Of a stretch of DNA of 64,000 nucleotides, positions 1 through 64,000 are shown piece after piece. This stretch comes from Oopsacas minuta (taxonomy: Eukaryota; Animalia; Porifera), in assembly GCA_024704765.1 (NCBI GenBank), contig JAKMXF010000298.1, positions 62,001-126,000 of the forward strand, given 5' to 3'. The position numbers and the translations under genes are program-made. Below the pieces are notes generated by a model. It did no database searches and was not told where the DNA came from. It was given only the letters and a program-made list of their open reading frames with translations. Positions within the stretch are counted from its first letter, which is position 1. Every line of letters starts with the position of its first letter.

Positions 1-1114
1 CCCAGTCTCGGTGTAGCTCATTATTCTCGTCCGGCTGAGGCCATTCTACTTCACTAATAACATGAGAAGTTTGGAATACTAAAGCTAACCAGTAACTGCC
101 CACGAATTCAGCTACAAAGTTGAAGAGAATTATTTTCCAAACTGGCATATAAAAGTATAAGAGAGTTATTCTGTAATTTATATGCAAGAACTTTCCTATA
201 TAGAATTGAGCTAGCTGAGAATAAGTAGGAATAGTTAGAGTCATAGCGCTATTCCTTCCGTTTCTAAGCAAGAAGAAATCTTGGAATCTAGTCTTAAGAC
301 CTAGAAAGCAGTAGACTAACGGTACATACACGTGCTGGTAGATATAGCGAGGCACCCAAGGCTGGTAACCTTTGATACGACGGATATCTGCTTGATGCTC
401 ATGTGTATAGATATCAGGATCTCTGCCGTCTACATTTGTGAATGGGTGATGTCCCATAGTGTGCTGGTGTATCCACATAAATATAGAAGCACCATGGAAC
501 AGATCATGAACAGCCCCGAATACTCTCCAGACCCAGGGTTTATGAGTTATAGAGAAGTGCGAGGAATCGTGTGTAAATGTCATTGCTACCAATGCAACAT
601 CAAATCCCCAAATAGCTGTCATAAACAGTGAGAACAGCATGTTGTCATGGTTATGCATTACAGTGAAGGTGCAGACAAACGCGAAACCTAGGAAGAATGC
701 ATACCTCACAAACATCCACGGATCATATTTAGGATCTATATTATTATCTTTGAAATATTTGTCAACTCTTTGTTTCAGAGTCCGGTAGAATTCACCACGG
801 GCCGGATAAACCGGCCATTCATTAGTTACCAACTCTCCAACATAAAATTTCTCTAAGATTTTGAAAGCCTTATCACTATGATATGATTCAAATAACTGCG
901 AAATATCACGTCCAGCACCTAACGCAATCTGGTCAGCACCACCTGGATGTTTCTCAATGAAAGAACTGACGTCATAAACCTTCCCGTGAACAGCGACATG
1001 AGCATTATCTCTACGATTGTAAGTAGCAAGTTCCTCACAGGTATAAGTACGTATTGCTTTAGCTGGTTTAACTATTCCATTTGTTAGACAGCCGTTAGCT
1101 ATGATATCTGTCAT
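1..1114 (-). CDS. Cytochrome b5-fused front-end (Delta5-type) fatty acid desaturase, intronless in the visible part, 3' end beyond window edge
   Basis: Hand translation from ATG 1114 is open to position 1: MTDIIANG...KVYDVSSFIEKHPGG (cyt b5 HPGG)...GAGRDISQLFESYH...THDSSHFSITHKPWVW (His box 1)...WIHQHTMGHHPFTNVDGRDPDI (His box 2)...WLALVFQTSHVISEVEWPQPDENNELHRDW. Absent from the ORF track, probably because its stop lies outside the window. Confidence 0.93.
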   Translation of the reverse strand, partial: MTDIIANGCLTNGIVKPAKAIRTYTCEELATYNRRDNAHVAVHGKVYDVSSFIEKHPGGADQIALGAGRDISQLFESYHSDKAFKILEKFYVGELVTNEWPVYPARGEFYRTLKQRVDKYFKDNNIDPKYDPWMFVRYAFFLGFAFVCTFTVMHNHDNMLFSLFMTAIWGFDVALVAMTFTHDSSHFSITHKPWVWRVFGAVHDLFHGASIFMWIHQHTMGHHPFTNVDGRDPDIYTHEHQADIRRIKGYQPWVPRYIYQHVYVPLVYCFLGLKTRFQDFFLLRNGRNSAMTLTIPTYSQLAQFYIGKFLHINYRITLLYFYMPVWKIILFNFVAEFVGSYWLALVFQTSHVISEVEWPQPDENNELHRDW

Positions 1115-1241
1115 TGTCTGGTATAAGAATGTTAAATCATTATCGTAAATACAAATACAGTAACTATTTTACCAACACAACACACAAATATAATATACAA
1201 GCTATGCTAATAGTGTTTACAAAATAAACTAATCCAATCAT

Positions 1242-4033
1242 TTATTTAGGAATTAAAGGCAGTCTTTCGTAGAATAGTATATAAGCTTGTGACTGGAATA
1301 CTTCTTCACTACTAACCTTACTCACCATGGAATCACTAATATAATACCAATCCTCTGCAGGCTGTATGTGTGTACTGAACTCATAAGGATTATGCATGTG
1401 TGTACTAGGATGTGTTACTGGTAAAGTAGGTTTGGAAGCTCCAGCTGATTCTGTAACAATATCCATAGGAACCTCTCCTTCTGTATCTGCTGTATCTGTT
1501 TCTATTCTGTCATTTTGAGGGAATTTAACTTGACTGCTCCAATCAGCAATATTAACATAAGCTATATAGTGTCCTCCTAGCATGCCACCTGAATGACTCA
1601 CTATTCCTCTCAGACAGTATAATATGGAGTTATCACTATCTCTAGCCACAAGTGTATCATTAACACAGTAAGGTGACATGTCTAGTACTAGAGGGAAGCT
1701 TATTTGTTTTCCTATCTTCTGTAGACGTAATCCTACTTGGGAGAATCTTTTGAGATGAATAGTGAGGATAGGAGGTAGAGATTTTATGTGGAATTGTTTG
1801 GTAGCGTCACTGAAAAGACATTTAGATAGATCTATACTTTCTTGACTACCCTCCTTATCATCATCTCCATTATCATCAGATAGCTGAGGATTACAGTGTA
1901 TACATAGATAGTCTCCGTATAGAATTTCAGGAGAGAAGAATTTTGCAAGAAAGTACTCTAACGTATCTTGACCTGAAGGTGTTGGTATTCGCAGTCTAGT
2001 TATATCTTTGGATTTGACTCTTTCTGGCTGTGTATCTGTAGGCTGTGCGTCTGTAGGCTGTGCATCCATAGGCTGTGTGTCTGTGGGTTCTGTAATCTCA
2101 GGACTAGAATGTTCTATTTCCATTTCTTGTCGTGAGTCTGTGTCAGATCCTTTTTGAGTTTGGTCGTTAGGAGATTCAATAGCAGTAATGTTGTCATTAT
2201 CAATTACAACATTATCTATAGGTAGAACAGAACCTGGTCTATTATCAGATATCTCGTCATTATCTTCAGGATTATCAGATTTCTCGTTATTATCTTCAGG
2301 ATTATCAGATTTCTCGTCATTATCTTCAGGATTATCAGATTTCTCTCCATCATCCTTAGGATGTGATGTATTTTCAGATATATCTTCATTATGTTTGTTT
2401 CTATAATTTACATCCATCGAAGCTCTATGTTTAATTCATTCATCCCATTAGTTAGATGCTTATCATGTTCTTTAGAGTCTTTACATTCTTCCTTGCTATC
2501 TCCAACTGTTGTATCAGTATTTTCTCCTTCAATTTCGCTTTTACCCCTATGTTTGGGTATAGGTATATTTGGCGTCAGTTGATGCTCATTGGATGTATTT
2601 TGGAAATCTTGAATACTCATAGTTTTACTGTTCTGCTTTTCTAATCGTTTCTTTTCTTTCTTGCTCAATTTAATTTCACCTTTCTTAAGTTGTTTTTCTC
2701 CTTTCTTCGTTTGGGAAGATTTCGGAGGATTTTGAAGCTTGCTAGGATGCTTCTCAATCGGTAATGGCAATGATATATCTAGAAAAGCTTCATTCACAGA
2801 GAAGATAGCCGTACAAGTGTGACATTTAACCATACTCAGTATTTCTCCACCAAACACATCATCAATAAAAGTACCAGTAAACACGAATATGTTTTTAAAC
2901 TCGCTAACATACTTCTTCAATAACTTCTTCTTTTCTTCAGGATAGTTCTTGAACTCTGTCTTATGTTCTGTTATTTCAAAATGATTCAAAAATGCAACTT
3001 TCAATCGCTTAATTTCCTCGTCCTTAATCATGTCAATTAGGAATCTTAACAACTCATGGCTATCCTGTTGAGAGCCGTTAGCGAACTTTCTATGTTTCTT
3101 AGCTATAGCTTGCTGTACTTTCTTTGGGAGATATCACACACTTTTTTGAATGAGGCTTTTTGCCGATTGACAAATCATGTTGTTTAATCTTAGTTTGTTT
3201 TATGAGGTGGGAGAGAGCATTTGTTAGAGCTCCAGGAGCTGTTGCAGCGTTAGTTATATAACTAAATGTTATAGGCTCTAAATTAGGATGTTTCTTGGGT
3301 ACTAAAGTGAACTCAGTACGATCTAACGTGTAACACAGCTCTCTCTTAAATGTACTCAAATACAGGAGATTCTGTAAGGCTGAATTGAAGTAGCAAGTAT
3401 TACCGAGGTTGTTTAACCCAATTACACGGAAATTACGAGTAATAGTATCTTCTATAGGTAAATCTATATGTGATAGATTCCTACACGGGGAATGAGGTTT
3501 CTTGCTGTTACTAAATACTTTCTTAGCTAAAGACAAACTACTCTCTAACTTCCCTTTTATTAATTCTTGAGCTATATACCTATCACACTTGTAGCACCAT
3601 ATCGTATAATTACTAACACATAACGTTAAACAGTGACTGGGTTCAGATTCATAATGTTTCAGACTATGTTGATTATCGTATCTACCACATCTGGTCTCAA
3701 AGCATTGCATACAGAACCAAAGTTCTCCACTGTCATTATTTGCAGTAGTATCCTCTTTAGATGCAATCTGTGCTTGCATGCAAGCTAAACATTTCACAGA
3801 TTTAATATTACACCCCCCCTTTTTGGCGAGCTTGTTTGTTAGGTGCTATTGGTTGCTGATATTTCCTAACATGTTTACATATAGCTTCATCTTTATCATT
3901 TAATTCTACAGTTTTCATCTTCAGGAGGGTTATCTAGAGCAGTAAGTTCTATATCCTGATTCGTTGGTGGAGTATTTGTAGATTTATCTGCGCTTTTTGA
4001 TTCTGACCCTTTGCCCTTTTTCTTGTTTTCCAT
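1242..4033 (-). CDS. Ubiquitin-specific protease USP16/USP45-like (ZnF-UBP + USP domain), interrupted by four single-base frameshifts
   Basis: Segments: MENKKKGKG (ATG 4033); AICKHVRK; KCLAC...LWFCMQCFETRCGR...HSLKHY...WCYKCD (ZnF-UBP); GLNNLGNTCYFNS (Cys box); QQDSHELLRFL; FGGEILSMVKC; LTIHLKRF; HSGGMLGGHYIAYV (His box); WYYISDS; AYILFYER. The joins need +1,+1,+1,-1 shifts and have no plausible intron. Confidence 0.85.
2026..2085 (-). repeat. 4 x 15-bp coding tandem repeat (TQPMDA/AQPTD-like peptide repeat) in the USP insert
   Basis: Plus-strand units GGCTGTGTATCTGTA / GGCTGTGCGTCTGTA / GGCTGTGCATCCATA / GGCTGTGTGTCTGTG. Confidence 0.9.
2241..2360 (-). repeat. 4 x 30-bp coding tandem repeat (SDNPEDNDEK-like) in the USP insert
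   Basis: Unit ATTATCAGAT(A/T)TCTCGT(C/T)ATTATCTTCAGG at 2241, 2271, 2301 and degenerate at 2331. Confidence 0.92.
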
Positions 4034-4171
4034 TCTATAAATAATATTAATTTTACTAAAAACAATACATTGAGATATGATACTCTCTAAATCAACAAAT
4101 ACTTTGCTACGACAGCTATAAACGAATAATGAATGGGATTATAAAGCAGGAATTATTGGGTAATAATAAAG

Positions 4172-4999: not shown

Positions 5000-5191
5000 A
5001 TCCTGTAATGAGGAATATTATTATCCTTTTAACTTAGACAACACAAGCCTATACCAGCAACATGATATCTAATAATAATAATAGTCAGTTAATGAAAAGA
5101 TAATTAAACTAACAATTTACAAGGCTATATAATCGTTATCACTCAAAAGATAAAGTTAACTCGTTCCATAGTTATATACTCAAAAGTTCAT

Positions 5192-20508: not shown

Positions 20509-20569
20509 TCTTAGCTAATTAACAAATTCATAAAAAGTGATAAACATATAAATATATATTCTAATAAAT

Positions 20570-21958: not shown

Positions 21959-22040
21959 AAACTATAAAATTATCAATTCGTATCAAGTTAAGAGAATAAA
22001 TTTAGTGTTCATAAATATTAATATATACAAAAGTAGATAT

Positions 22041-22865: not shown

Positions 22866-22959
22866 TTGAAATGTTAACTAATAATCTGAATAAAATATTA
22901 AATAATATATTACCTTTAATTAACCTGATAGTTTCCAAAGAGATATCTAATTTACTAAT

Positions 22960-25885: not shown

Positions 25886-26012
25886 ATAAGCTAATAATTA
25901 AATTATATCATTATTCTAATTTGTATAATCATGTAAAGATACAACAATAATATAATTAACAACTAAGTGAAATATACAATAATTACCAAAAAGTGAAGAG
26001 AAGTTATTTCTA

Positions 26013-27614: not shown

Positions 27615-27738
27615 ATAGCTAGCTAATATGAGAAATAATCAAAAGTATTAAAGTTCTAATATAAACGATGTAAATAAATAAAATGGTTTGGAAATATAAA
27701 TCAGTCAAAATATATACGAGTTTACCTTTATATACGAA

Positions 27739-36200: not shown

Positions 36201-37519
36201 GTTACAGGGAATATTACGACTGTCTTCATTTGGAGAGATATACACCATAGTATCAGGATTTAAGTTGAGGAGGGTTAAGAACTTGTCTACTGTATCTACG
36301 GAATTTCTAGGTTGTATCATAGCTATATCACCAGGACAATAGCACAGTTTAGATGTACTAGTATCTAATACTATAAGTCTTGTGTCTTGAAAATGATCTT
36401 GTCGTGTTATTCTATCATTAGATTTTAGTTTAGAGATATAAGGAGAGTATTCAGAATAGCCAGATGAGATTGGAGTAGATTTATTGGCTATTGGATCTGT
36501 TGAGATGTTATACTTTGGAGGTGGTAAGCTGCTATCTGGTCTAATTTCTAACCCAGGAGGAAGTGGGAATAATGACAGAGCTTCTAAGCATACTCCAGAC
36601 ATCCAAGGCAATACGACAGCATCCAACCCTAAGTCATGTTGCTCATCTGCTAGCGCTAGTGGATAGAAAGAAATACCTCCCAATTGTCTCACGCGTTTAT
36701 CAACGCGTTTAGCTACAAAGTTAAACTTCTGATAAGAAGAGTCGCCTAGCCCAAGAACAGCGAACAGACATTTCTCTAAAGAATTGTTCGGTAGCTCGCG
36801 TCTTAAAAGGAATTTCCAAGAAAGTTTCATATTATCTGGCTCTTCTCCTTGTCCAGTCGTAGAGCATATAAATACCACAACACGCTCAGTGATAAGATTC
36901 TGCATTACATAACTATCCATTGAACAAACTCGTACTTTAAAATGTCTGTTTCTGAGTAGGGGACATAGCTCTTCTGCTATATCTTCAGCAGTACCAGTCT
37001 GTGAACCATATAGCACAAGTATACGTCTAGCATGATCCATAGCTTGTAAACCTCTAATTTATCTAGTTAACTGAATTTATATTATAAATATACTATATTG
37101 AACTTACTAAACGCTTCTAGAGTCATTCCTTCTTCTACAAAAGGTCTGAAGTCCGGAGCATTATCTAGAATAAACTGACAAATATGTGCTCTGTACTGCC
37201 AATGTTTAGTGTGATCTTGTTCATATTGATCAGCTAAAGCTCTGAATAAACAATTCCTAAACAACAAACAAAAAACTAAACAAAATAAATTGTGTATAAA
37301 ATCATAGACTATTTACCCATCACCCATGATCTGCTGTAATTTCAGGCCTCTAGTTCTAAGCTGTAGATTTAAACTAATAAAAGATTTATCATTTTCATTA
37401 AGATACTGTCTAGCTTGTCTCTGTCTACGCAGAGCTTTCCTCATGTGATTATTCCTCATATGTTCTTGCTGTCTGTTATGTTGAGAAGCGCTCCCACGTT
37501 TCTTGCCGTTTTTAGGCAT
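32383..37519 (-). CDS. OTUD3: OTU deubiquitinase OTUD3-like, about 7 exons, host of two nested genes
   Basis: Exons approximately 37519-37316 (ending GDG), 37258-37108 (NCLFRALADQ), 35187-34946 (GVFGGNETLVAFAR...HLAYHNEEDHYSSV), about 34890-34735, about 34668-34579 (UBA-like ICQALEDNDWDIGSAI), 33364-33171 (polyQ), 32553-32383 (NKKRKELAK...GLAI*). Phases checked at several junctions. Confidence 0.85.
33214..33259 (-). repeat. Pure (CAA)n microsatellite encoding polyglutamine in OTUD3
   Basis: Plus-strand (TGT/TTG)n; the exon reads KPK-Q14-HQH. Confidence 0.92.
34325..34504 (+). CDS. SMIM20 (MITRAC7/phoenixin precursor)-like microprotein, 59 aa, antisense in an OTUD3 intron
   Basis: Hand translation MDVRTRYRLAKQKSNRKILIAMLGVTIALLVPMYPAFIHPYISGLSYQDLRKEVWNRKK*. 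N.R-TM-YP...P and C-terminal VW match human SMIM20 ([28 protein letters not shown]...KVWSD). It is one residue below the ORF track's apparent 60-aa cutoff. Confidence 0.65.
   Translation: MDVRTRYRLAKQKSNRKILIAMLGVTIALLVPMYPAFIHPYISGLSYQDLRKEVWNRKK
35286..37040 (-). CDS. NDOR1: NADPH-dependent diflavin oxidoreductase 1, intronless, nested on the same strand in OTUD3 intron 2
   Basis: LVLYGSQTGTAED (FMN), STTGQGEEPDNM, LGLGDSSY, RAFSIASSP, VMVGPGTGVAPFRS, FFGCR, FSRD, YVQH, C-terminal QLETWS. Confidence 0.96.
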   Translation of the reverse strand: MDHARRILVLYGSQTGTAEDIAEELCPLLRNRHFKVRVCSMDSYVMQNLITERVVVFICSTTGQGEEPDNMKLSWKFLLRRELPNNSLEKCLFAVLGLGDSSYQKFNFVAKRVDKRVRQLGGISFYPLALADEQHDLGLDAVVLPWMSGVCLEALSLFPLPPGLEIRPDSSLPPPKYNISTDPIANKSTPISSGYSEYSPYISKLKSNDRITRQDHFQDTRLIVLDTSTSKLCYCPGDIAMIQPRNSVDTVDKFLTLLNLNPDTMVYISPNEDSRNIPCNITSVCRLLDLAYNIDLTSRPRRSFFSLLSKLSPDEKERERLIEFSSAEGQDDLFDYCYRPRKTLLEVLEDFPQSSAAIPLTYLLDIIPAIRPRAFSIASSPQIHIGEIHLLIARIEYKTKLPKPRLGLCSNWLANLKSGDPIPVWIKQATFKLNNSETVPLVMVGPGTGVAPFRSIILQRTSRGINSNYLFFGCRSCSKDFYFEKEWKQLESSNMLNFFTAFSRDNEQKSYVQHVILEKKLIITKLLDENCMVLIAGNAKEMPSSVLAAFRDVIKEQNLISEMEAEEIIQMLIKQGRIQLETWS

Positions 37520-37667
37520 TAAAATGCTAAAAATTACATAAATTGGTTATGAGTAAACTGTTTTACAGAATAGTATATTGTTCTGCCATTTACAAGAAAA
37601 TACTAGTCACTAAGAATGCCAACAATAAATATGAATAATGGAGCAATAAATCAACAGCTGGTAATAG

Positions 37668-42866: not shown

Positions 42867-42902
42867 AAGTAACTATACTATACAGAAAAATATTAGCATT
42901 TA

Positions 42903-43008
42903 CAGCTGTAAGAACTCATTGTGTGTAACAATTCATGTCCTTATAACCGGCATAAATATACAGGAATATATGAGAACCGTTTGCAGAGGGTGTTGCATAT
43001 ATCCGGTG
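42903..43008 (+). mobile_element. MITE family B (eroded), between CCDC175 and GBF1
   Basis: Homologous to 49741-49863 (CATGT.CTTATAACC.GCATAA.TATACAGGAA.ATATGAGAACC.TTT); TA at both ends. Confidence 0.7.
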
Positions 43009-43067
43009 TAATTAATATATGAATATATTTTGTTATATACTTTAATACGAACACAGTGATACAAGGC

Positions 43068-46000
43068 TTAATAGTTGTCTTGAGGAGAAGATAGATTTTG
43101 TAGGTTAGTTTTCAATAATGTTAGTTCATCTCTCATTCTGTTACAAATAGAACTTAAGCTCTCTTTCCTATAAATAGCTATCTCAGAGAACTTAGACATA
43201 CTGACTAACATCTCTCTATCTCTCGAACTAGCTGTCTTCTCTAACTCCTGGTCTTCTCTCCAGTCTATATGTAGCTTACTTTGATACTGGTTCATCTCTT
43301 CTAAAAGTAAGCTACGTACCTCTTCTCGTTTTGAGACTAAATCTAGCATGTTTGATTGATCATTTGACAACTTGTCAATTGTCTGTTTGAAGTGATCGTT
43401 TTGCATCTCAACCACTCTTACCTTATTCGTAGCTTCCCAAAGAGACTTTTCTAACTCAATCGCTTCTTTTGAATACTCTTTAATAAGATCCCTGGTGTTT
43501 GCTCTTTTAGTGAGAATCTCAATCTTGAGATTTTCCTGCATACATCTTAATGCATTTGTTTCACTAGTCATTCGTAGTATTCTCTCATTCAGACCTGATT
43601 TCTGAGTCTTCAGCTCTATTACCTAAATACCAAGCAATTACTACAGATTAACCATGGATAACAGCATATCCGTCCTACCTTGTCTTGCACTAATTTGTAT
43701 TGCTCGCTAGCAGCCCTCAATTCTTCCATTACCTCATTCAGTTTGTCCTCTTGCTCTATTCTATCTGGTTCAATGAGTGCTAATTCAGTATTAATATCTC
43801 TAATAGAACTCTTCAATACTTCAATATCATGTGTATCTTTATCCTCAATTATTCTAAACTCACTACTCTCTGTGTCTAACTCAGATTGTAGATGAGTAAG
43901 GAGATTCATATGTTCAGATATTTTCTCTTGTAATACAATCATTTCTTTTGTATATTTTGATTGATCTTCTTGTGCAGTAGACATACGTTCATTACTGCTT
44001 GCAGAAAAGTCAGTCTCTTCCTTCTTTTTAGTTTGAAACTTAGTCTGTAGAGTTTGTAGCTGTATTTCAACATTATGTCTCTCTTCTGCACGTTTCTCTA
44101 ACTGATCTTTAGTAGCAATTATCTTATCTTTGAGATAGGTTATTCCAGCTGAATGACTCCCCTACGATGCATTAGTAATAATTATTAATTACAAAGTTAC
44201 AACTATTATAATAAAATGCTAATAATGAAACGTTTCCATATTGACCAGCCACTAAACGATTTTCCAATTAAGTAAACCTGTGTGAAGACTATTGGCTATT
44301 CTTAGATATCAGTTAAATTGTCATTATGGATATTTTCCATTTTATTTTCTAGATAAAATATTTACTTCTAAGTTTTCGTATCTCTTCTCAAGATCCTTAT
44401 TCTCTTGTCTTAGTCTCGTAGCCTCGTCTGCTTCGGAAAGTAGAGACCTCTTAGACCTCTTCTCAACATCTTTTACAACAGATAGTTCATTAAATACAGA
44501 TTTGCTTGCTCTCTCTAAAGCTCTCACTTCCTTTTCTAACTTCTTTTTAGTTGTTCTCAGCAGTTCATTGTTGATATCTACTTTCTCTATTTCTTCACGC
44601 AGAGTAGCTATATCCACCTGTAAATACACATTAACCATATAAGGACAACTATTGTCATATAATTATATTTACTTTACCTCGTATTTCTCACTCTTCTCAT
44701 TCATTTCCTTCCTAGCTGCAGCTTTCTTAGCCTTCATTTCAGGTATTTTGACAGTATAACCTTGTAGCAATAGAGAATTAGTCTCACTTTCATTATCAAG
44801 GCTAGCAAGATTGGATCTGCAATGAGAAAGATTGTCTTCAGATTTCTTGAGTTTACGCTTCTCAGTATTAAGGTCAATCTCGCTATCTTTAAGCTCATCC
44901 TTAACTAGATACAAATCACGTTCTCCTACTGCATTTGACTTTCGCAGTATATTTCTCTTTTCTATTGTTTCTAATACCACAGCAGTTAAATTCTCTTTCA
45001 GAATTCTATGTTTTTCAATATCTGTCTTCAATTCATCCTTTAGCTGAGTAATACGAAATTCCAGCTCAGAGATTTCTTTGTTAATGTCCTCCAAACTCTC
45101 TTTCGCTTCGTTCAATGATATCTGTATCTCAGCCCTAATCAAGGAGAATTATACTATAATTTGCTTATAATAGAAAATTTTCATAAATTATTTCAATACA
45201 AAAATCACATAGGAATTGCCTCATCAATGACTTCATCTTGCGAGAATGAACTAATTTATAAAAGTACAATTATAGGAGATATTAAGCTTCCAACCAAACG
45301 AGCATTTAATTGGAAGGAAGACCGTTAGGCACACAGATATGGCATCAAAGATGTCAGTTTAGAGATTGGCTTCATTCACTAATATAATAAATAAAGCAAA
45401 TAGCGCAGAATCAATACAGTAACTAACATGTGGAAGTATATTTTGGTATCAATCATATTGACTTTATGTATAACCAGCAATGCATTGCCTACAATAAAGC
45501 AGAATAATGAACTGATAGAAGATGAGGGTGGGAAGATCATCAAGTATACAGAGGAGCTGCTGAAGCTCTGGGTAGAATGGGAGGAATGGAAACATGAACA
45601 TTCTAAAGTATACCAGGATAACAAGGAGAATGAGCATAGATACCAAATATGGTTACAAAACAAGAATAAAATCAACACACACAACTCTGATAAAACAAAA
45701 TCACATAAATTAGGAATGAATACGTTTGGAGATTTAACACATGAAGAATTCAAAAGTATGTATCTATCGAAATCACATTATAAACTACAAAGAAATGGAA
45801 TCAAGTTCTTACCACCCCTGGGATTAAGTGACTTAGCTGATGCTGTCAATTGGACATCAGAAGGGTACGTGACACCTGTTAAAAGCCAAGGACAGTGCGG
45901 TTCATGTTGGGCATTCAGTACAACCGGTGCTTTAGAGGGACAACATTTCCGATCTACTGGTGAACTTATTTCTATGTCAGAGCAGAATCTTCTTGATTGC

Positions 46001-47307
46001 TCATCTAAATACGGGAACCAGGGATGCTCGGGAGGATTAATGGATTACGCTTTTGAGTACATTAAAGATAACGGTGGTATTGATTCAGAGGATAGCTATC
46101 CTTATGAGGGAGTAGAAAATGAATGTAGATACCGGAAGGAAGAATCTGTTGCTACGCTATCAAGCTATGTAGATATACCCAGTGGAGATGAATACACGTT
46201 ACAGCTAGCAATAGCAAGTCAAGGTCCTGTCTCATTGGCAATAGACGCTTCTCAATCCTCATTCCAATTCTATCGTAGTGGAGTGTATGTAGACAAAAAT
46301 TGCAGTAATAAAGAACTTGACCATGGAGTTCTGGGAGTAGGATATGGTGTCGAAGGGGATCTGGATTATTGGCTGGTTAAAAACAGCTGGGGAACTATAT
46401 GGGGAGACCAGGGATATATAAAAATGCTACGTAACGGTGATAACCAATGTGGAGTCGCGACAGTGGCTAGTTACCCTTTAGTATAACTCAATCTATATAA
46501 TTGTAACAATATTTGCAAGTGTTTCTCTATAAAATACATTCATGGTATATTTTGTATATTTTCTAATTATTAAAATTGATTGTGGATAATAGTTAGAATT
46601 TTAGATAGAAGAAGCGCCAATGTTTGCATTTAGTTCAAAGGCTAATTCAATGCATTCATACACTCATTGGTTTTCCTATATAACATGTAGTATTCAGGGA
46701 AATCAAATTCTCTCTAAGACAATAGACAATCTGCTCTAAACAATTGAAAGTAGTAAGAATGTTAGATATCATAATTAGAAACAATTTTAACTACAAACCT
46801 CATTGTCAACATTTCATTCAGATAGTCAATAGCAGAATCGTATTGTTTCTGTAGAGTTTTCATAGTAGGTATCAGAACGGATGTATGTAGATCAGTGATT
46901 TCTTGTTCTTTCTTCAATCTCTCCATTTCCTCTTCCATAGCTACGAGTTTATTCTGTAGATCATCTATCAGTGCTTTGTTAGACATCCTTGCAGACATAA
47001 CAACCTGCAGTATTTCCGTTTGAATGGCAGTTGGCATGTTGTCGAACTTGTATCTAAGTGCACTGCATCGAATTGTCTCAGATTCTAGAGTTTCATGAGC
47101 TTTCTGACATTGTCTGTCAATATCTGACAGTTTTGACGTTAATTTTTTGATGATAGGAATAGCATCTGATATCGAGTGATTGGGAAATAAATTTTCACTC
47201 TGTACTAGTAACTCTTTAGTACGTAATATCTCTGTAGATTCTACTTGAATTCTCTGCTGTTCAGCTTTACAAACATCAATCGTTTGCTTATCTAATGAAA
47301 GCGCCAT
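43068..47307 (-). CDS. CCDC175: CCDC175-like long coiled-coil protein, multi-exon
   Basis: LESETIRC...MPTAIQTEI...SARMSN...LNEML aligns with human CCDC175 LEIESMEL...LPNSIKREL...DARRLN...LNQTM, and the C-terminus also aligns. Intron 45135-46798 (AG|GTTTGT...TTAG|G, phase-consistent) holds cathepsin L. Confidence 0.7.
45428..46486 (+). CDS. CTSL: Cathepsin L-like cysteine protease, intronless, antisense in a CCDC175 intron
   Basis: Signal peptide; ERFNIN-like (E..R..IW..N...I..HN); MNTFGD; [11 protein letters not shown] (catalytic Cys); LDHGVL; VKNSWG. Confidence 0.95.
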
Positions 47308-47595
47308 GTGTCTATTTGCTAGGAGATGTGACTATCTTCCTATTTCTTATCAAATTAAGAGTTTGCTTTGCTAGAGCAATGTCTTTACGGAAAATATATC
47401 GTGATGTGTATTTGTATCTGTTTTTTACACCAATAACCTCCTTGGGAGTTACAACTGGCATATAGGATTAATTGCTAGGATAATATAAATACAGTAGAAC
47501 TAGGATAAGACTTACCCCCCTCAGTACGTACCAACCGAATTCAACTGTACATGAAACATTAAATAGATAAGAGTTCTGTGGGTATAAACTAAATT

Positions 47596-48567
47596 TCAGT
47601 CTAAACCTTCTAATCTATTACAACATAAAGATGGTAGAACATTCCAATTATAAATATAACCAGGAACTGTATTGAATTCCTCGCTACATATATTACCTGT
47701 CAATAGATACAGTTTGTATTTTTCTCGCATGCTGTTAGGGGTTTCCTTATGAGTTATGATATAATTATCTGTACAGCCTCTAGATTCGGATTCAGTATTA
47801 AATCTGTTATCATGTTTTCTTGTGATAGCTAGTGTACTAAGCCAAGCACCGATTGTAATATCCTCATTATTATACTGCTTAAGATAGTTTGAATTAGCAA
47901 CAATATAATGCACAAGATCAGAACTTAGAATGTAACCACCACCAAATGCAAATGGTAAATATTTATCACAAATATTCCATTCATGTTCAGCCCATTTACC
48001 AGAACGTTTTACAGAGGCTCGTCCATAGAAATAGCCCCAATACAACCTGGAATGAGGTAAAGCTTCCTCTTTTATCGTTTCCAATAAATGGTCAACAAGT
48101 ACAAAACTATCATCATCACATTTCAACACGAAATCAGTCCTGATATTTTTATTCACCCATTTGAAACTCTCAACAACTTTAGCGGTGAGCATTTTATAGC
48201 TTTCTAAAATATTTCTCAATAAAATAATATCTTGAAATAACTCCAGTTCTTTCTCAACTTGTTCTTGAAGTTTCTGTTCATTATTATTTCCGATTACAAA
48301 CTTGTAATCAACATTAGCTAATTTTTTATGTTCATTTAGCCATGTTTCTCTTATAGCTTTTCTACGCTCAACATTTTCCCCAGCTGATAGAATAAGTATA
48401 AATACCGTGTATGGATTGTCTAGCGACATAACCCAATTCCTGATTTGTGTAGAAGGACACTTTTTGTTTTCATCTGTCATATAAACGTTATAAAAATTGA
48501 AAAGTAACTGGATGAATAAAACTACGATAGTGAGAGAGAGTATATGTGAAAATCTATAATTCTTCAT
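47596..48567 (-). CDS. B3GALT6: Beta-1,3-galactosyltransferase 6 (GAG linker galactosyltransferase II)
   Basis: Type II TM; KCDDDSFV, YWGYF, AFGGGYILSSDLV, EDITIGAWL, RFNTESESRGC, YNWNVLPSLCC. Likely start MKNYRF at 48567 (TAG 2 nt upstream) rather than 48612. Confidence 0.9.
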   Translation of the reverse strand: MKNYRFSHILSLTIVVLFIQLLFNFYNVYMTDENKKCPSTQIRNWVMSLDNPYTVFILILSAGENVERRKAIRETWLNEHKKLANVDYKFVIGNNNEQKLQEQVEKELELFQDIILLRNILESYKMLTAKVVESFKWVNKNIRTDFVLKCDDDSFVLVDHLLETIKEEALPHSRLYWGYFYGRASVKRSGKWAEHEWNICDKYLPFAFGGGYILSSDLVHYIVANSNYLKQYNNEDITIGAWLSTLAITRKHDNRFNTESESRGCTDNYIITHKETPNSMREKYKLYLLTGNICSEEFNTVPGYIYNWNVLPSLCCNRLEGLD

Positions 48568-48692
48568 TTCTAAAACACTGAGCAACAAATAAGAGCTAGA
48601 CATAAAGTTCATCCCTCCGCCCGCCGGTTATTAGAAATTATAAGTGTATATGCATTTTAATATACTTGTTAACAGCTATTATTATCAGTTGA

Positions 48693-49250
48693 TTACGTTA
48701 TAATTTCATTCTCCATTTCTACAGGTTTATAATTAGTTTCCATATTACTACTCTCCTCTCTAGCTTCAGTATGACTTGTTGTTATAGAACGTATCTGTTT
48801 ATACCAATCCATTCTCCGATTCTCGAGTGTTCTTGGTTTTCTCCTGACTACCTTTAAAGTTCGTATTTTACTTCCTTGTGTGTTTGTTGCTGGCTTAAAT
48901 TTAGAGTATCTTCTTGAAATTGTATTTCTGGTGCTTTTCAACATAGATTGTATCACTGAATTGAGTAATATTTGAGATACAGCTTCCCCCTGATTAGATT
49001 CTATGTTGGAACCTGCTCTCTGGAATAATTCCATGTATTTATCACAAGTTTGCATAATCTCATTCTCAAACTGTGTGGATAATAATGATTTCAATAGCTC
49101 TATTGCTTCTAGAGTTTCACTATTATTTGTTGTAGAAGTTGATGTATTCGTGTTGTTGTTGTTGTTTATTAGTTTGTTGTGAGGCTTAGATCTCTTGTTG
49201 AACAACAATCTGGTATAGTCTAGCTGTGGAGAAGAGTTATCAGGCTCCAT
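48693..49250 (-). CDS. DNTTIP1 (TdIF1)-like protein, dimerisation domain only
   Basis: IELLKSLLSTQFENEIMQTCDKYMELFQRAGSNIESNQGE aligns with DNTTIP1 LELLRAVLQPSINEEIQTVFNKYMKFFQKAALNVRDNVGE; the C-terminal domain is not seen. Confidence 0.6.
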   Translation of the reverse strand: MEPDNSSPQLDYTRLLFNKRSKPHNKLINNNNNTNTSTSTTNNSETLEAIELLKSLLSTQFENEIMQTCDKYMELFQRAGSNIESNQGEAVSQILLNSVIQSMLKSTRNTISRRYSKFKPATNTQGSKIRTLKVVRRKPRTLENRRMDWYKQIRSITTSHTEAREESSNMETNYKPVEMENEIIT

Positions 49251-49364
49251 TTATGTAGATTATTCTAAATACACAAAAATGACAAAACCTGATAAAAATA
49301 CTTTGTGTGTAATTTGAATCGTTATATATATATATATGCACAATAATTATAGCATAATTAGAAA
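49251..49364. promoter_or_regulatory. Candidate bidirectional promoter between divergent DNTTIP1-like and MED7 genes
   Basis: Only 114 bp separate the two divergent ATGs; contains a (TA)7 tract at about 49323-49336. Confidence 0.45.
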
Positions 49365-50262
49365 ATGGCAGAAAAATCAGAGGGTGTATCAACCTATCCG
49401 TTACCCCCAATGAAGTATTATAAAATTTTTACAGATGAGAATATAGCCAGGGGACATGTACCCGAGGCTCCACCCCTCCCTACAGGAGAGTACCTTGTAT
49501 TCGGACTACCTTACCACGTAAACGATCCCCTTATAAGACCCTTAGAAGATCAGAACATAACCAGATTGTATAAGATAGGTGACGAGACTACTCGTGTAGA
49601 AGAAATGAAGAAATTGAATAAAAGCATTCTTCTAACATTTCTAGACCTGTTACATATCTTATCTAATAACCCTACTTCTCCTGATAGAATAGCTCGTATT
49701 GAACATCTACAGGTATGTATACCTTCTTTACAAATATGTACAGCGGATACTGGTTATAAGAATACCCTTGGGAGTAGCGATACATGTTCTTATAACCAGC
49801 ATAATATACAGGAAAATATGAGAACCATTTTCTAGAGGATGGTGCTTATAACCGGCATACATGTACTTTAAAATTAATTCATAATTATTGTAGCTATTAT
49901 TCATTAATCTCCATCACTTGGTGAATGAGTTTAGACCGCATCAAGCTAGAGAAACAATCAGAACAGTTATTGAACATCAATCTAAGCAAAAATTAGAAGC
50001 AGAAAAGAACATACAGATTGCTCTAGAAAAGTCTAAGAACACACTCAGCTATTGTCAGGACAAATTGAATCAGTGTTTAGCTTCCAGACCCCAATACAGC
50101 ACTGTACCCCATAGTATAATTCCAGTGACCTCACATGAAGACACGAGATACGAAGCTAATCCTACCATGCAAGATTTCAGTACAGAGAGACAACTGCATG
50201 ATGAGATGGTCACCTTATCTTCTCATTTAGAAGGCATTATCCAGCAATCTGGTGTGATTTAA
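49365..50262 (+). CDS. MED7: Mediator subunit 7, 2 exons (49365-49712, 49894-50262)
   Basis: YPLPPMKYY, PPLP.GEY.VFG, LKKLNKSIL.TFLDLL; exon 2 LLFINLHHLVNEFRPHQARET; CAG|GTATGT donor and TTGTAG| acceptor in phase 0. Confidence 0.93.
49741..49863 (+). mobile_element. MITE family B in the MED7 intron
   Basis: TA|CAGCGGATACTGGTTATAAG ... CTTATAACCGGCATACATG|TA: about 20-bp imperfect TIRs and TA TSD. Confidence 0.8.
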
Positions 50263-50354
50263 TATAACCGTATGATATGAGCTAATATGTATTGATATAC
50301 TATTACTTATACCCAATTCTTATTAATCTCATTATCTCTTGTTAAGTTAGCTAT

Positions 50355-51779
50355 ATGGATGTTCTACGAGCTTACGATCCTGCTAAATTTGTCGTAAATG
50401 CAGTTGGGATAAATGAAACTTCCGCGAGGATATTCATATCTATATCAGTAGCCTTTTTACTATCTTTCCTGTACAGACCAATTATATCAAAACAACCTTC
50501 TATTCCACAACATATTATAAATGCAGTTATAGGATCCAGTTTATTGTACTACTGCTTTGGGAATGAAGTTCTCCACTTGGTATTCGATGTAGTTATCGTG
50601 ATATTTATACTGAAGACGATTGGAGGTACATTTATAAGTCTTATTTCTACCTGGATAATTGTGTTCGGACATCTCTTATACGGGTACTATAACATTATAA
50701 CATCAAATAATGTAGCTAGACTAGACTGGACTATACCCGGATGTGTTCTATGTCTGAAACTAATCGGTTTGATATCAGATCTATACGATACTGTCCAGGC
50801 AAATAAGAGAGGAGAGACAAATCCAAAGAAAATTCCTCTAAAATCAAATAGGATAGGGGTATTCGAGGTAATTGGGTATTCTACTTGCTTCACTACATGC
50901 ATAGTTAGTCCTGTTATTAGCTTCCAAAGATATGTAGATTTTAGCAATGGGACATTATTCGACACAGAAACTATACCTAATAGTATGGGATATGGGATTA
51001 TGCGGTTTTCAATAGGTCTCCTATTTGTATCTATCTATTCGTTACTCCTACCGTATGTGCCAATTGATTATTTCGCAAGTGCTGAATTCGTTGCAAAGCC
51101 TTTCGTATATAAATTCTTCCTAGCAGCTCTGAGATATAAAGTAATTTTCAAGCAATACTCATCTATTTGGCTTTTGAGTGAAGGAGCATGTGTAGTAACA
51201 GGTCTCTCATATAAGGGCAAGAACAAAGACGGTTCTATTGACTGGTCTGGTTGTGCAGGAATACACGTTATTGAGTTAGAAACAGCTATATACATGCAGC
51301 AGATAATAAACTCATTTAATCTTACTACAAACGAATGGGTACTACAGCATGTTTACAAGAAATGTAGATTCTTAAACTCTAAAATAGCTTCTCAATCAAT
51401 ATCGCTATTATTCCTGGCTGCTTTCCATGGATTTCTACCGGGATATTTCATATGTTTCGCACACGAGATAATCGTTGTAATTGTGGAGAAACAGTTTATG
51501 GATTACGGTACAATGAAGTTAGGTCCGTTTTCTAGCTGGCCTCTAATCCTCAGAATCATTTCTATTCCATTCTTATTTCTCTATCAATTGTTTGGTATGA
51601 CATTAACAGTAGGAGTATTCCAGTTACTGACACTAGAGAGATGTCTTACCTTCATGGGAGCTCTCCATTACTACACTATATATGCGTATATTATCCTGGT
51701 GCCGATTGGTAAGTATCTTGAAATACAAGTGAAGAAGGAAAAGAAACAAAATCTGACTGAGCGAGAAAAGCACGAGTAA
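50355..51779 (+). CDS. MBOAT lysophospholipid acyltransferase (LPCAT3/MBOAT5-like), copy 1
   Basis: Multi-TM; WTIPGCVLCLKLIG, WLLSEGACVVTGL, SFNLTTNEW, FLAAFHGFLPGY (catalytic His). Confidence 0.9.
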   Translation: MDVLRAYDPAKFVVNAVGINETSARIFISISVAFLLSFLYRPIISKQPSIPQHIINAVIGSSLLYYCFGNEVLHLVFDVVIVIFILKTIGGTFISLISTWIIVFGHLLYGYYNIITSNNVARLDWTIPGCVLCLKLIGLISDLYDTVQANKRGETNPKKIPLKSNRIGVFEVIGYSTCFTTCIVSPVISFQRYVDFSNGTLFDTETIPNSMGYGIMRFSIGLLFVSIYSLLLPYVPIDYFASAEFVAKPFVYKFFLAALRYKVIFKQYSSIWLLSEGACVVTGLSYKGKNKDGSIDWSGCAGIHVIELETAIYMQQIINSFNLTTNEWVLQHVYKKCRFLNSKIASQSISLLFLAAFHGFLPGYFICFAHEIIVVIVEKQFMDYGTMKLGPFSSWPLILRIISIPFLFLYQLFGMTLTVGVFQLLTLERCLTFMGALHYYTIYAYIILVPIGKYLEIQVKKEKKQNLTEREKHE

Positions 51780-52059: not shown

Positions 52060-52089
52060 TACTAATATCTCCAAATATTTGTAAATAGC

Positions 52090-53502: not shown

Positions 53503-53619
53503 GATTCGATCCTTTGAATTAACGAACTATTTAATAATTTTAGATTATTCTAAATATAATTAAAGTTTAATAAACATCGATTTATTAATTATAATAATCA
53601 AATCAAGTAGCAATATTAG

Positions 53620-57624: not shown

Positions 57625-57793
57625 AAAAATTAACTAAAAAATATTGTAAAAGTGCACTGTTCATATCTAATATCTAATAGGCATATAGTGGACCATCTTC
57701 GCCAAAAACAGTTCGTATATTATGAAATCAATTTATCGATAAAATTTCAACATGACAATGACTTCGTAATGTTCATAGTGTAATTACAGTTAT

Positions 57794-58666: not shown

Positions 58667-58918
58667 ACAAGCTAATACTAAATTGTATCGAGAATTGGTA
58701 AATAGAAATGCTACAAACATTGTTGCCAGATCGAGGACAAAGTTCCTATATTTCGGCCTTGGAATGAACTTTTGACTTATGGCAAGAACTTGGCATGAAC
58801 CAATGAACTTTTGGAAATAACTTCGTGGATACAACAACTGGCTACAAAATTCCAATAAAAACTTATTTCAAATAAATAAACCCGATCAGCATACATATAA
58901 ATATAATCTCAATTCGTA

Positions 58919-61900
58919 TTACAATTTACTAATCGGCTTAACACGTCCATTGAATGCTATTTGTATCACTTCAGGAATGTTTGAAACGAAAACAAACTGA
59001 ATTTGTGATTGCAAAGATTTTGGTATTTCAAAAAGGCTTTTTCTATTCTTACTCGGCATCATTACCTTCTTAATACCGGCTCTATGAGCACCTAGAACTT
59101 TCTCTTTAATTCCTCCAACTGGTAGTACCATTCCTCTAAGCGTAATTTCACCTGTCATAGCTAGATCAGGTTCAACCGGTTGTTTTGACAGGAGTGACAC
59201 GATAGCTGTCAAAATCGTAACTCCAGCAGATGGACCATCCTTCCCTACAGCACCTGCTGGGAAGTGTATGTGTATATCTGTAGTACTAGGTTCCCATTCC
59301 AATCTGTAACTAGCCAAATTAGATTTAATCCAATTCAGAGCTAGCTGAGCTGACTCCTTCATAACATCCCCTAGATTACCAGTTAGTGTAAGTTTACCAC
59401 TTCCATTCATCTTAGAAACCTCCACGAACAATATTTCTCCTCCAAAGCTAGTCCAAGCAAGCCCAGTAGCTGTCCCTGGTCTAGACACCCTCTCTGCTAT
59501 ATCATGCTCAAATATAGTTGGACCAAGGATTTCCTCAATTGCAACTGAATCAAGATTAAAAGTCTCTACAGATTCATCTACTCTTGCTTCTGCTATCCTC
59601 ACAGCTACAGCTCTACACACAGTAGCTATCTGTCTTTCTAGCTCTCTAACTCCAGCTTCCCGTGTGTAATTAGCTATAGATATATTTATAATTCTAGAAC
59701 ATTCTATAAAATTCTATAAATACTCACCAATAAGAATCTGTGTGCTATTACTGGGTATATTAAGATGCTGTGTTTCTAATCCATGTTTCTTAAGCTGTTT
59801 CGGTATAAGATATCTCTGAGCTATTTCAACCTTCTCTTCCTGTGTATAACCTGGTACTTCTATCAACTCTAATCTATCTCTAAGAGCTGGTGGTATTGTA
59901 TGGGTCATATTGACAGTACAAATGAATAGAACAGTTGAAAGGTCAAAGGTGATGCCAAGGTAGTGGTCTACGAAGGAGTGGTTCTGTTCTGGGTCTAACA
60001 CCTCAAGGAGGGCTCCAGCTGGGTCTCCTTGTACCCCTCTATTTAGTTTATCCACCTATAAGCAATAGTTTAATACAACTGTTTAAAATTTAAGCCTCAG
60101 TTAGTTGGAAACTTGTTTCAGGAAATATTGTCATTATTATCTCACCATTTCTCATTATAATATAAGAAGAAATTTTTTCCATGAATTTGACATTTGTTTT
60201 ATGATAACGTCATAAAATAATGAGATAATGACATCGTGTGGAGCTGAAACAAGTTCTCATTAGCAGGTGCCTTATAGTATTCATAATATACCTCATCCAG
60301 TAGTATAACCGGGTTATTAACTCCCACAGACTTGATTCCCTGTAGAATCCTCCCAGGTAATGATCCTATATAAGTCCTTCTATGTCCTCTTATCTCAGCC
60401 TGGTCTGCTACCCCTCCTAGAGATATTCTATGGAACTTTCTACCCAGAGTATCTGCTATAGCCTTTGCTATACTTGTCTTACCAACACCAGGAGGACCTA
60501 CGAAACACAAAATAGGACCTCTGAGATCGTTCTTGAGACTCTGGACAGCTAAATACTCCAAGATCCTCTTCTTAAGCTTATCCATACCGTAGTGATCAGC
60601 ATCTAAATCTGTGTTAAAGCGAATTTTATCGAGTCAGTTATCGGAGGTAATACAGCAAATTATCATTGCAAAATCCACCATCCATGGTTAAAACGAATAT
60701 TCATATAGGGGATTGTTTTACCTAATCTAGCTTTCTTAACATCAACACTATCCTTAGTAGATTTGCTCCAAGGTAGATCTAATAAGAATTCTAGATATCT
60801 TAATGATACATGATACTCAGGGTTATGTGATTGTATCTTCTCCAACTTAAGTAATTCCATCTCAGCTGCTTCACGTGCATGTGGAGGTAGATTACCTGCT
60901 TCTAACCGATCTCTTAGCTTAGACATTACATCTCTAGGCTGTTTAGTGGGAGATGGTTGTCTAGACTAAAATATTTATAATACGAGCATACCATATTGTA
61001 TGAAATATAGTGTAAGCTCCATAAACGTGGTATCAGTCCGTATGGGACCAGGAATTCTCTCTATTCATTTTTCACTCCATTTCCCATTTTCACAGGTCCC
61101 GTTTGTGGAGTTACACTGTATTTGATATGCCAAGCTTACGAAATTATCTATATCATCAAAGTTTCCATATTTCCTCAAAACCGTGAGAGGAAAGTTATCT
61201 GTACTTCTCTTCTCATGTGGTATCAGCTGAGCTTTCTTCTGATAGATATTAATGAAAATTTGAAAGCGTTTCTCAAGTTCAATAGCTCTCAACAGATCTA
61301 GCTTATCACTGAAATCTAACTCTAAGAATGAAGCGAGGAGATCAGGGTATAATTCAGGGGGTGTAGCACGAATAGTAGTGTATAATTGACGAGAAGTTCT
61401 AGAGCTTAGTGTAGTACGGATTGATTTGATAAATTTCTGAGCTTCAGTCTGAAATTGCTTCACACTATTGGGGAGGTTATTCACATCAAGTTTAGGATCT
61501 TCATGATTATAACGCACTTTATAATACTCCCCTACATGACGTAGAGACTTCACACGAATACGTCCTAAACCTGTCATAAATATCTATAAAGTATATAAGA
61601 ATTAAGTCAGAGATTTTAGTAAAGAATAAATTTGAGGTTACTTGGAAATGAGGTTTAGGATTCGATCTAGCAAGAAGTTTGTTAATTTTGACAGAAGTAC
61701 CGATTTGGTTCTCAACTACAAGTCTCTTCTTCTTCATGTCAGATGTTTGGAACCTGTCAAACTCATCAGCTGTCAGAGGTAGAACAATCAGTATTTTATT
61801 CATCCAATTATCATCATTCCAAAACTCTTTCTCAATTAGTGTAATACTCTCGCCAGTATTCTTACCATAGTTTAGTGTTAATCTACCAAATGCTACTGGT

Positions 61901-61968
61901 AGTATAATAAACTCCTTAATAATCAGGACAGGAGCTTCCTCACCGAATTGAAACAGATTGAATGACAT
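58919..61968 (-). CDS. LONP2: Peroxisomal Lon protease, multi-exon
   Basis: N-domain SNPKPHFQ|IFMTGLGR; Walker [10 protein letters not shown]; ILLDE|VDK; GKDGPSAG (catalytic Ser) and GGIKEK (Lys); C-terminal SKL PTS1; canonical GT-AG introns. Confidence 0.95.
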
Positions 61969-62008
61969 AAAGCTAACACAAATAACAAGAGATATAAAAA
62001 TGATATAC

Positions 62009-62136
62009 CAAACAGTTCCTAACCTTCTTCAATAGCGGACCACCTATAGTACCAATTTTAACACATTTGTGGACTCCCTTCCTGCTGTCGTCAGTAGATC
62101 ACCAAGGATACATGGACCCCAGGTTTGGAACCGCTG
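62009..62136 (+). mobile_element. hAT-type MITE between POLR1C and LONP2
   Basis: Ends CAAACAGTTCCTAACCT...GGACCCCAGGTTTGGAACCGCTG (imperfect TIRs like Charlie-type hAT termini); flanking 8-mers TGATATAC / TCATATAG match at 6 of 8 positions. Confidence 0.65.
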
Positions 62137-62256
62137 TCATATAGAATCTACCTAGCAACGAATCAAGAATGCAATATAAAGTGAATAGAGTTGTATACTT
62201 CACTCTTAAAACGCTTAAATCATATAGAAATATAAAAGATACTCAATAAAGTACTA

Positions 62257-63327
62257 TTAAGTTTGTTTAGCTATCTCTCCTATAAAATAATCACATTTCT
62301 CCATTAATATCTTAATAGACTCCTTCACAATGTCAATAGCAGGTAGAACTCCAATAGATTCTACAGTGAAAATAAAATGATCACTAATTCTTGATAATTC
62401 GACCAAATCTTTGAGTTCTTTATGTCTACACACTTCTCTAGTAGCTGTATCCTTCCTGGCATCAAGTACAAAAGCTACATCGATATTATTCACGGTTTTT
62501 AGACCGATTACTCCCTCAGCGAAACAAGATTGTAGTTTCCTAGCTAATTCACCTGTGATGGGTTCCAATAGCTTTATAGAAGGTAATAGTCTATAGGTAG
62601 CAGTTGCGACAGGTGAAAACTTAGCATGATCCTTGCCTACACCCTTCACACAGTGCAATTTCATTTTAATCTCCTGTCCAGGTCTCAGTTTCATAATTAA
62701 GATATCATCTTGACAAGTCTTGACCTCTCCCAACAGCTGTGCTTGATCACCAATAGGAACCCATTTCATATGACGTGTGTATACATTAGAATTCTTATAC
62801 TTCTCCTCTGGTAATGTAGCGCCTACTGATGCAGCTTTATTGTGTGAACACTTTATACTAAGCTCAAATTCTAGAACTGAATTAGAGTCTACAATTAGTT
62901 GGTTCTTTTCGTTATAAGCGGGGAAATTGAATAGCCTATTAGATTAGAAAATTTAGTTAAAATAGCAAAATTAGAGTAGGGGGTGAATACGTCATAATTA
63001 CCTTGGATCAGCTTTAATAGGAATAAGCCCCATCCTGTGTGCTAACACATCATCTGGCATGACTGACGTATTATTCATCATATACACCTTTTCAATAGCC
63101 ATAATAGGAACTTCTGCTAGCATTATCCTACGGTAAGCATTAGCTATAGAAGCATCAACTCCAATTAAATCAAACTGAATCTCCTCGTCTGTTTTGTACT
63201 TTATATCTACACGGATATCTTTCAGGTATTGCTCAAATGTTTTACCTGTTTCAGCGTGTACATTCTTTGTATCAACTTTGGTCTCACTCAATATTATCTT
63301 TGATTTTATATCACTTAGCGACGCCAT
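62257..63327 (-). CDS. POLR1C: RNA polymerase I/III shared subunit RPAC1 (AC40), 2 exons
   Basis: FDLIGVDASIANAYRRIMLAEVP, LAHRMGLIPIKADPR|LF, KLRPGQEI, GVGKDHAKFSPVATA.YRLLP, HFIFTVES.G; intron 63001-62936. Confidence 0.96.
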
Positions 63328-63351
63328 AGCTAAATTGGAATTTAACGTAGC

Positions 63352-63379
63352 TGATTGATTGATTGATTGATTGATTGAT
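63352..63379. repeat. (TGAT)n tetranucleotide microsatellite upstream of POLR1C
   Basis: About 7 tandem TGAT units. Confidence 0.9.
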
Positions 63380-63486
63380 AAATAATATACAAATTTAAAA
63401 TATTGGATAAATAATAAACAAACAAATTCCATTCAAAATCTGGGAGGTTAGGAAAACATAAATGTACCAGAATCAAGCGACTCTAG

Positions 63487-63834
63487 TCAGTATTTTAGGG
63501 ATATATATATGGCAAAGTACAACAGTAGAAAGACCACGCCCATCAAAGTGACAATTATCCCGATAACAAGGAAGATAATTGCGATAACACGAGCTATTCT
63601 GTTATACAATATAGCTTTATCGTATTCACCCTTCTGAAACTTCAGGTATGCTATAACTAGGAATATTCCAGCTAGTAGGCCAGGAAATCCAAACATAAAG
63701 TATCCAAGTATAACTAGCACAGCTGTAATCAACAGAGCTCTTTCAGTAATGGGTGCTTCCTGTGTTTGGAGAGTAGCCCCATCAGAAGTGTTGGTCCTCT
63801 GTTGCGATACTAACGCAGTTTTCTCCTCAGTCAT
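63487..63834 (-). CDS. CD225/dispanin (IFITM/PRRT-like) small membrane protein
   Basis: Two hydrophobic segments separated by ...FQKGEYDKAILYNRIARVIAII..., matching the dispanin G-D/E-Y...A...S/N..A pattern. Confidence 0.6.
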   Translation of the reverse strand: MTEEKTALVSQQRTNTSDGATLQTQEAPITERALLITAVLVILGYFMFGFPGLLAGIFLVIAYLKFQKGEYDKAILYNRIARVIAIIFLVIGIIVTLMGVVFLLLYFAIYISLKY

Positions 63835-64000
63835 AATATATGCTAAAATTATAATTATTAATGCATTATCATTACAAGGATTTTGACCAGTAACCGGATT
63901 TAACTACGCCTTATAATAATTGGAAAGTTTAATTAGAATCTAAAGTATGATAATGGTAATACGTATAAGGAATTGCTATACTCAAAATAGTTATTTCCCT

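Follow-up and report, generated by a model that had tools for sequence, protein, structure and literature searches.

Spliced-leader trans-splicing at three genes, and a start-proximal TAG signature, in a gene-dense region of the glass sponge Oopsacas minuta

In a 64-kb stretch of the genome of the glass sponge Oopsacas minuta, many start codons are closely preceded by an AG that resembles a 3' splice site, which raises the question of whether these AGs receive a spliced leader (SL) by trans-splicing. The stretch, hereafter the window, was placed by exact protein look-up at ~62001-126000 of contig JAKMXF010000298.1 of assembly GCA_024704765.1, and the JAKMXF records are those of the O. minuta whole-genome project (PMC10280926). 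It is AT-rich (GC 31-38%), its gene density is extreme, and the minus strand carries most open reading frames (ORFs). In an initial annotation, the start-proximal AGs had been read as a window-wide signature of SL trans-splicing, and most mRNAs had been proposed to be trans-spliced. The analyses below show SL trans-splicing at three genes and a real enrichment of AG-ending motifs before start codons.

The direct evidence comes from contigs of sequencing runs, which were compared over 6 kb of the window (45380-51379) containing six to seven gene starts and about seven transcription units. Runs X1 and X3 cover this region at an even depth of ~65-100 and are thus evidently DNA. In run X4, from the same sample, depth varies from 0 to ~2990, and a GT..AG joint removes a 181-nt intron of MED7 (49713-49893); X4 therefore behaves as RNA. 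Contigs of X4 carry the same foreign leader end (…AATCTTCATAAAAAAACTTAC, then AG) at 47476, 49266, and 50345, on genes of both strands, and the contigs of X1 and X3 are colinear across all three positions, such that the join is present in RNA only. At each joint, the genomic part begins with AG, and the two bases before this AG are not a second AG. It follows that …CTTACAG is the end of the leader itself and that the genomic AG, as the acceptor, is spliced away. The three acceptors (TAG, TAG, and AAG) follow 20 nt with a T fraction of 0.50-0.70. The leader is not encoded in the window, as judged by a search allowing up to three mismatches. Given a leader shared by three AGs, colinear DNA, and the absence of the leader from the 64 kb, SL trans-splicing is shown at these three genes. 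A common non-templated leader in RNA had been anticipated at the AGs, and an identical one is found at three genes. As to mechanism, the initial annotation was therefore right, in that a leader is joined at AG acceptors, but it had marked none of the three junctions correctly.

The first of these genes, DNTTIP1, had not been listed at all. It opens a run of minus-strand genes and is head to head with MED7. Its exon starts at 49264, and its ATG (49250) is 14 nt past the acceptor. Since only ~92 nt separate the acceptors of DNTTIP1 and MED7, any outron must be very short. The NCBI annotation fuses DNTTIP1 with B3GALT6 (47596-49250, minus strand) into one 511-aa product with DNTTIP1_dimer and Galactosyl_T domains; in the sequence, the two are parted by a stop codon and an 80-nt spacer.

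The MBOAT1 acceptor follows the MED7 stop by 82 nt, with the exon beginning at 50347 and the ATG (50355) 8 nt past the acceptor. The TAG at 50348-50350, which had been marked as the splice site, is not the junction, as the RNA uses the AAG at 50344-50346, although this TAG could be an alternative acceptor. In run X5, which bears another organism label and is 95-99% alike, the G at 50346 reads A, and the AAG acceptor would therefore be lost there. This hints at a turnover of acceptors, with AAG and the adjacent TAG replacing one another.

The third gene encodes a coiled-coil protein ('CCDC175-like'). Its acceptor is 120 nt behind the B3GALT6 stop, its exon starts at 47474, and the X4 contig is colinear from the junction to 46799, where a 1664-nt intron is spliced out to 45134 with the frame open across the joint. 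The first ATG (47461), 13 nt past the acceptor, opens an upstream ORF (uORF) of 49 codons, and the main ATG follows at 47307. The TAG at 47312-47314 that had been taken for the acceptor is the stop codon of this uORF, and the true junction (TAG, 47475-47477) is 163 nt upstream. The uORF (47312-47461, minus strand) stops 4 nt before the main ATG, a layout like that of termination-reinitiation, and it is possibly a separate small protein. Additionally, cathepsin L (45428-46486, plus strand) is antisense within the 1664-nt intron (45135-46798, minus strand), and the NCBI annotation breaks the host gene into models of 181 and 583 aa.

Leader junctions are thus seen at three of the roughly seven transcription units in the 6 kb, among the joints listed, and no cathepsin L junction is among the X4 joints listed. 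An exact protein look-up for transcript contigs returned no record for DNTTIP1 and only a genome contig for cathepsin L. Metagenome contigs, in a collection without this sponge, gave no match to the 23-nt leader, and prokaryote genomes, likewise without this sponge, gave ten matches to the leader plus GT, all from unrelated bacteria and close in number to the chance expectation. A literature search with the leader letters matched only Staphylococcus primer papers.

Across the whole window, the starts themselves can be asked whether they are preceded by acceptor-like motifs more often than other ATGs. All 20 motifs quoted in the initial annotation were recovered by string search, once each and ending at the ATG of the stated gene. 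Its count of about 20 in about 30 starts with a YAG (Y, C or T) within 10 nt agrees with our own list of 29 starts, in which the first ATG of the first coding exon was taken mechanically (so that the starts of B3GALT6, TMEM192, and POLR1C differ from the earlier choice): a YAG is present within 10 nt at 19 (66%) and within 15 nt at 22 (76%). For all 2357 ATGs of the window, the corresponding values are 37% and 48% (binomial p = 0.002 for both). Mononucleotide shuffles of the upstream 40 nt gave 6.6 +/- 2.3 of 29, with 0 of 2000 attaining 19, and the enrichment over shuffled sequence that had been expected is thus present. TAG alone accounts for the excess (15/29 versus 24%, p = 0.001), and CAG, AAG, and GAG are at background near the 29 starts. 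Overall, the start-proximal YAG signature is real, at ~1.8-fold over a high background, and implies that roughly half of the starts bear a YAG that is not due to chance. With the background this high, a third to half of the individual examples could be chance, and a single marked AG is unreliable alone and only a probabilistic guide. Since AAG is not enriched, the three starts for which an AAG within 5 nt had been cited (FAXDC2, EMG1, and NDOR1) are without statistical support, although MBOAT1 demonstrates that AAG is usable as an acceptor all the same.

Composition and ascertainment could produce such motifs with no bearing on splicing, as TAG is common in an AT-rich genome and an in-frame stop precedes the first ATG of any ORF. 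They do explain a share of the single sites: the null frequency within 10 nt is 36-37%, 5 of the 19 YAG sites are in-frame TAGs, the supposed 'CCDC175' acceptor is a uORF stop through which the RNA contig reads, and a stricter, reader-independent mechanical ORF set reaches only p = 0.05 (13/23). They do not explain the whole signature, for which we consider them very improbable. When in-frame TAGs, as possible ORF-bounding stops, are left out, the excess persists (14/29 versus 25%, p = 0.006), as it does against the first ATGs of 498 short random ORFs that share the same stop-then-ATG ascertainment (36%, p = 0.001); the reverse-complement motif CTR is found at only 7 of 29 starts in the same windows; the upstream tracts are T-rich as at cis acceptors; and an RNA leader is attached at three of the AGs.

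The resemblance to cis-splice acceptors was assessed with ten cis introns placed by ORF structure or RNA in GBF1, POLR1C, LONP2, MED7, and the coiled-coil gene. TAG is the acceptor in all ten. Over the 20 nt upstream, the fraction of T is 0.475 at the cis acceptors and 0.45 at the start-proximal YAGs, versus 0.32 at all 4364 YAGs of the window (Mann-Whitney p = 3e-6). Before start-proximal YAGs, T also exceeds A over these 20 nt (9.0 versus 6.6, p = 0.014), and the tract is therefore strand-specific and not mere AT-richness. With TAG and a T-rich upstream 20 nt in both classes, the AGs before starts do look like the genome's own intron acceptors, as had been claimed. This likeness would also be expected if each AG were the acceptor of an ordinary intron in the 5' untranslated region (UTR), with a non-coding first exon upstream. 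However, the median length of same-strand spacers, measured from a stop to the following ATG or acceptor, is 132 nt (18 pairs, range 54-312 nt), which bears out the earlier remark that most of the AGs have no room for an upstream exon and a promoter. Each spacer must already house the 3' UTR and poly(A) site of the upstream gene as well as an acceptor, and the divergent DNTTIP1/MED7 pair leaves only ~92 nt between acceptors. Moreover, three genes, lying on both strands, share a foreign sequence that the 64 kb do not contain. Cis-splicing is therefore a most unlikely account. An artefactual origin of the shared letters, from an assembly chimera, a library adapter, or a template-switch oligonucleotide, is scarcely credible, even with just 11-21 loose letters in Logan contigs of one sample: all three joints fall exactly at an AG after a T-rich tract and not at variable transcript ends, loose parts of fewer than 31 letters are, by our reasoning, expected from a k=31 graph at a sequence common to many transcripts, and the A-rich leader resembles no common adapter that we know of. 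An independent study has also found a leader in another glass sponge (PMC10282587).

SL trans-splicing very probably explains both the start-proximal TAG signature and the shared leader. Several observations weigh against extending it freely: the 37% background of YAG before any ATG is high; the five in-frame TAGs may be plain stop codons; the leader was seen in assembled Logan contigs of a single sample, over 6 kb and at three junctions among the joints listed; and 0 of 3 RNA junctions coincide with a previously marked AG. In another glass sponge, Aphrocallistes vastus, a leader is on just 4% of long reads (PMC10282587). Under the proposed mechanism, genes form same-strand trains, ~130 nt apart, and a short leader, donated by an SL RNA whose gene is elsewhere, would be attached by the spliceosome to an ordinary 3' splice site, made up of a T-rich tract and TAG (in some cases AAG) and lying between a few and ~15 nt ahead of the first ATG. 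Each mature mRNA would then open with the leader (3' end …AATCTTCATAAAAAAACTTACAG) and continue with a gene-specific 5' UTR that is very short. The SL RNA gene would be small and would carry, besides the leader, a GT donor and an Sm-binding site (AAUUUUGG-like). We infer that most of the other AGs in Table 1, which are predictions from the sequence pattern, are also used, that the leader comes from such a small Sm-type SL RNA, and that transcription of the gene trains is polycistronic. It is plausible that trans-splicing affects most mRNAs.

Table 1. Splice acceptors, attached leader letters, and predicted start-proximal acceptors in the 64-kb window
Feature	Gene	Position	Strand	Placement	Evidence
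SL acceptor TAG	DNTTIP1	49265-49267	-		X4 loose end at 49266; DNA contig X1 record 5 colinear
SL acceptor AAG	MBOAT1	50344-50346	+		X4 loose end before 50345, AAAAAACTTAC; DNA contig X1 record 7 colinear
SL acceptor TAG	coiled-coil ('CCDC175-like')	47475-47477	-		X4 record 19
Foreign letters (mRNA sense) AATCTTCATAAAAAAACTTAC	DNTTIP1	49266	-		X4 loose end, 21 letters
Foreign letters (mRNA sense) AAAAAACTTAC	coiled-coil	47476	-		X4 record 19, 11 letters
Foreign letters (mRNA sense) AAAAAACTTAC	MBOAT1	50345	+		X4 loose end
Initially marked TAG	MBOAT1	50348-50350	+	4 nt downstream of junction seen	
uORF stop TAG, initially marked as acceptor	coiled-coil	47312-47314	-		X4 contig runs through unspliced
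CAG	desaturase	1118-1120	-	3 nt before ATG 1114	predicted
TAG	USP	4035-4037	-	1 nt before ATG 4033	predicted
CAG	PCMT	5003-5005	-	3 nt before ATG 4999	predicted
TAG	importin-like	20515-20517	-	6 nt before ATG 20508; 61 nt downstream of DCAF4 stop	predicted
TAG	DCAF4	21962-21964	-	3 nt before ATG 21958	predicted
TAG	NlpC/P60-like	22878-22880	-	12 nt before ATG 22865	predicted
TAG	sulfatase-1	25891-25893	-	5 nt before ATG 25885	predicted
TAG	sulfatase-2	27619-27621	-	4 nt before ATG 27614	predicted
TAG	NDOR1	37054-37056	-	13 nt before ATG 37040; also AAG 37043-37045	predicted
TAG	OTUD3	37527-37529	-	7 nt before ATG 37519	predicted
TAG	GBF1	42873-42875	-	6 nt before ATG 42866, after T-rich tract	predicted
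CAG	cathepsin L	45417-45419	+	8 nt before ATG 45428	predicted
TAG	B3GALT6	48570-48572	-	2 nt before second ATG 48567; none near first ATG 48612	predicted
TAG	MED7	49359-49361	+	3 nt before ATG 49365	predicted
TAG	MBOAT2	52086-52088	+	1 nt before ATG 52090	predicted
TAG	FANCI	57634-57636	-	9 nt before ATG 57624	predicted
TAG	TMEM192	58672-58674	-	5 nt before second ATG 58666	predicted
TAG	LONP2	61973-61975	-	4 nt before ATG 61968	predicted
TAG	POLR1C	63330-63332	-	2 nt before ATG 63327; first ATG 63432 opens AATC-repeat low-complexity stretch	predicted
TAG	CD225 family	63843-63845	-	8 nt before ATG 63834	predicted

A spacing of ~130 nt is that of nematode or Oikopleura operons. Two features of operons are found here, namely same-strand spacing of the order of 100 nt (at the 18 spacers) and the leader on downstream genes (at MBOAT1, behind MED7, and at the coiled-coil gene, behind B3GALT6). 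A wider reading can be offered only tentatively, and it may well prove wrong: most Oopsacas genes would be in true operons, as polycistronic units that include same-strand genes nested in host introns and are resolved by a single SL, also at promoter-proximal genes.

Among known systems, the closest is that of the hexactinellids, which share with this case both animal class and mechanism, a short common leader at the mRNA 5' end joined at a 3' splice site. Hexactinellid sponges were listed with SL trans-splicing, with operons not reported there, in a 2021 review-type statement (PMC7986045), where the trans-splicing is attributed to Douris et al. 2010. In A. vastus, a leader of ~37 nt is reported, and many genes are nested (PMC10282587); that paper differs in being without acceptor or operon analysis. 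Trans-splicing, spliced leader, and operon are words that do not occur in the genome paper of O. minuta (PMC10280926), which gives the mean intergenic distance as 2 kb. A literature search found no paper linking Oopsacas or glass sponges with operons. As in the SL1/SL2 system of Caenorhabditis elegans, a T-rich tract and AG stand a few nucleotides before the ATG, same-strand spacers are ~100 nt, and the leader is on promoter-proximal as well as downstream genes. In contrast to C. elegans, the acceptor is TAG and not TTTCAG, and polycistronic precursors are here only presumed. There is also no sign of a separate SL2-type leader at the three genes seen, since the last 11 leader letters are identical at promoter-proximal and downstream genes. 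Oikopleura dioica similarly combines a very compact genome, tiny spacers, acceptors abutting start codons, and one SL; it is of another phylum, its leader is unrelated, and operon transcription is demonstrated there but proposed here.

Pfam scans back many of the gene names initially assigned in the window, including the cytochrome-b5 desaturase, USP, PCMT, FA hydroxylase, RAD21/Rec8, DCAF4, EMG1, two sulfatases, RWD-PARP, forkhead, NDOR1-type reductase, GBF1, cathepsin L, B3GALT, DNTTIP1, MED7, two MBOATs, TMEM192, Lon protease, POLR1C, and CD225. The forkhead gene (30116, plus strand) is the sole developmental transcription factor in the window. It has no YAG within 50 nt of its ATG, is 875 nt from its divergent neighbour, and may be one of the genes without trans-splicing. 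At POLR1C, an (AATC)n microsatellite (63340-63400, minus strand) separates the first ATG (63432) from the likely true start (63327), and a start at 63432 would add a low-complexity N-terminus. The MED7 intron contains a short dispersed repeat (49747-49860) with hairpin arms of 16 nt, whose DNA depth relative to its flanks is ~5x in X1 and X3 and ~30x in X5; a related copy is found at 42940-43000, just upstream of GBF1. Rfam and tRNA scans of the window were empty, with no Rfam family or tRNA matching this repeat, and the multi-copy element is therefore not an SL RNA or tRNA gene.

As SL trans-splicing is a known mechanism in this animal class, the novelty of finding it here is modest, and its extent, the genome architecture, and the correction of gene models are what give the finding its value. 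True 5' ends and start codons can be recognised by their SL acceptors, which would correct annotation errors such as the DNTTIP1/B3GALT6 fusion and the split coiled-coil gene. The distribution of SL trans-splicing among animals is patchy, and it is debated whether the mechanism is ancestral or arose repeatedly; a glass sponge with a large share of its genes trans-spliced in operon-like trains would be a well-placed, early-branching data point. If the operon reading is true, it would give sponges their first described genome architecture of the operon type, and both the published gene models and the mean intergenic distance of 2 kb would have to be revised.

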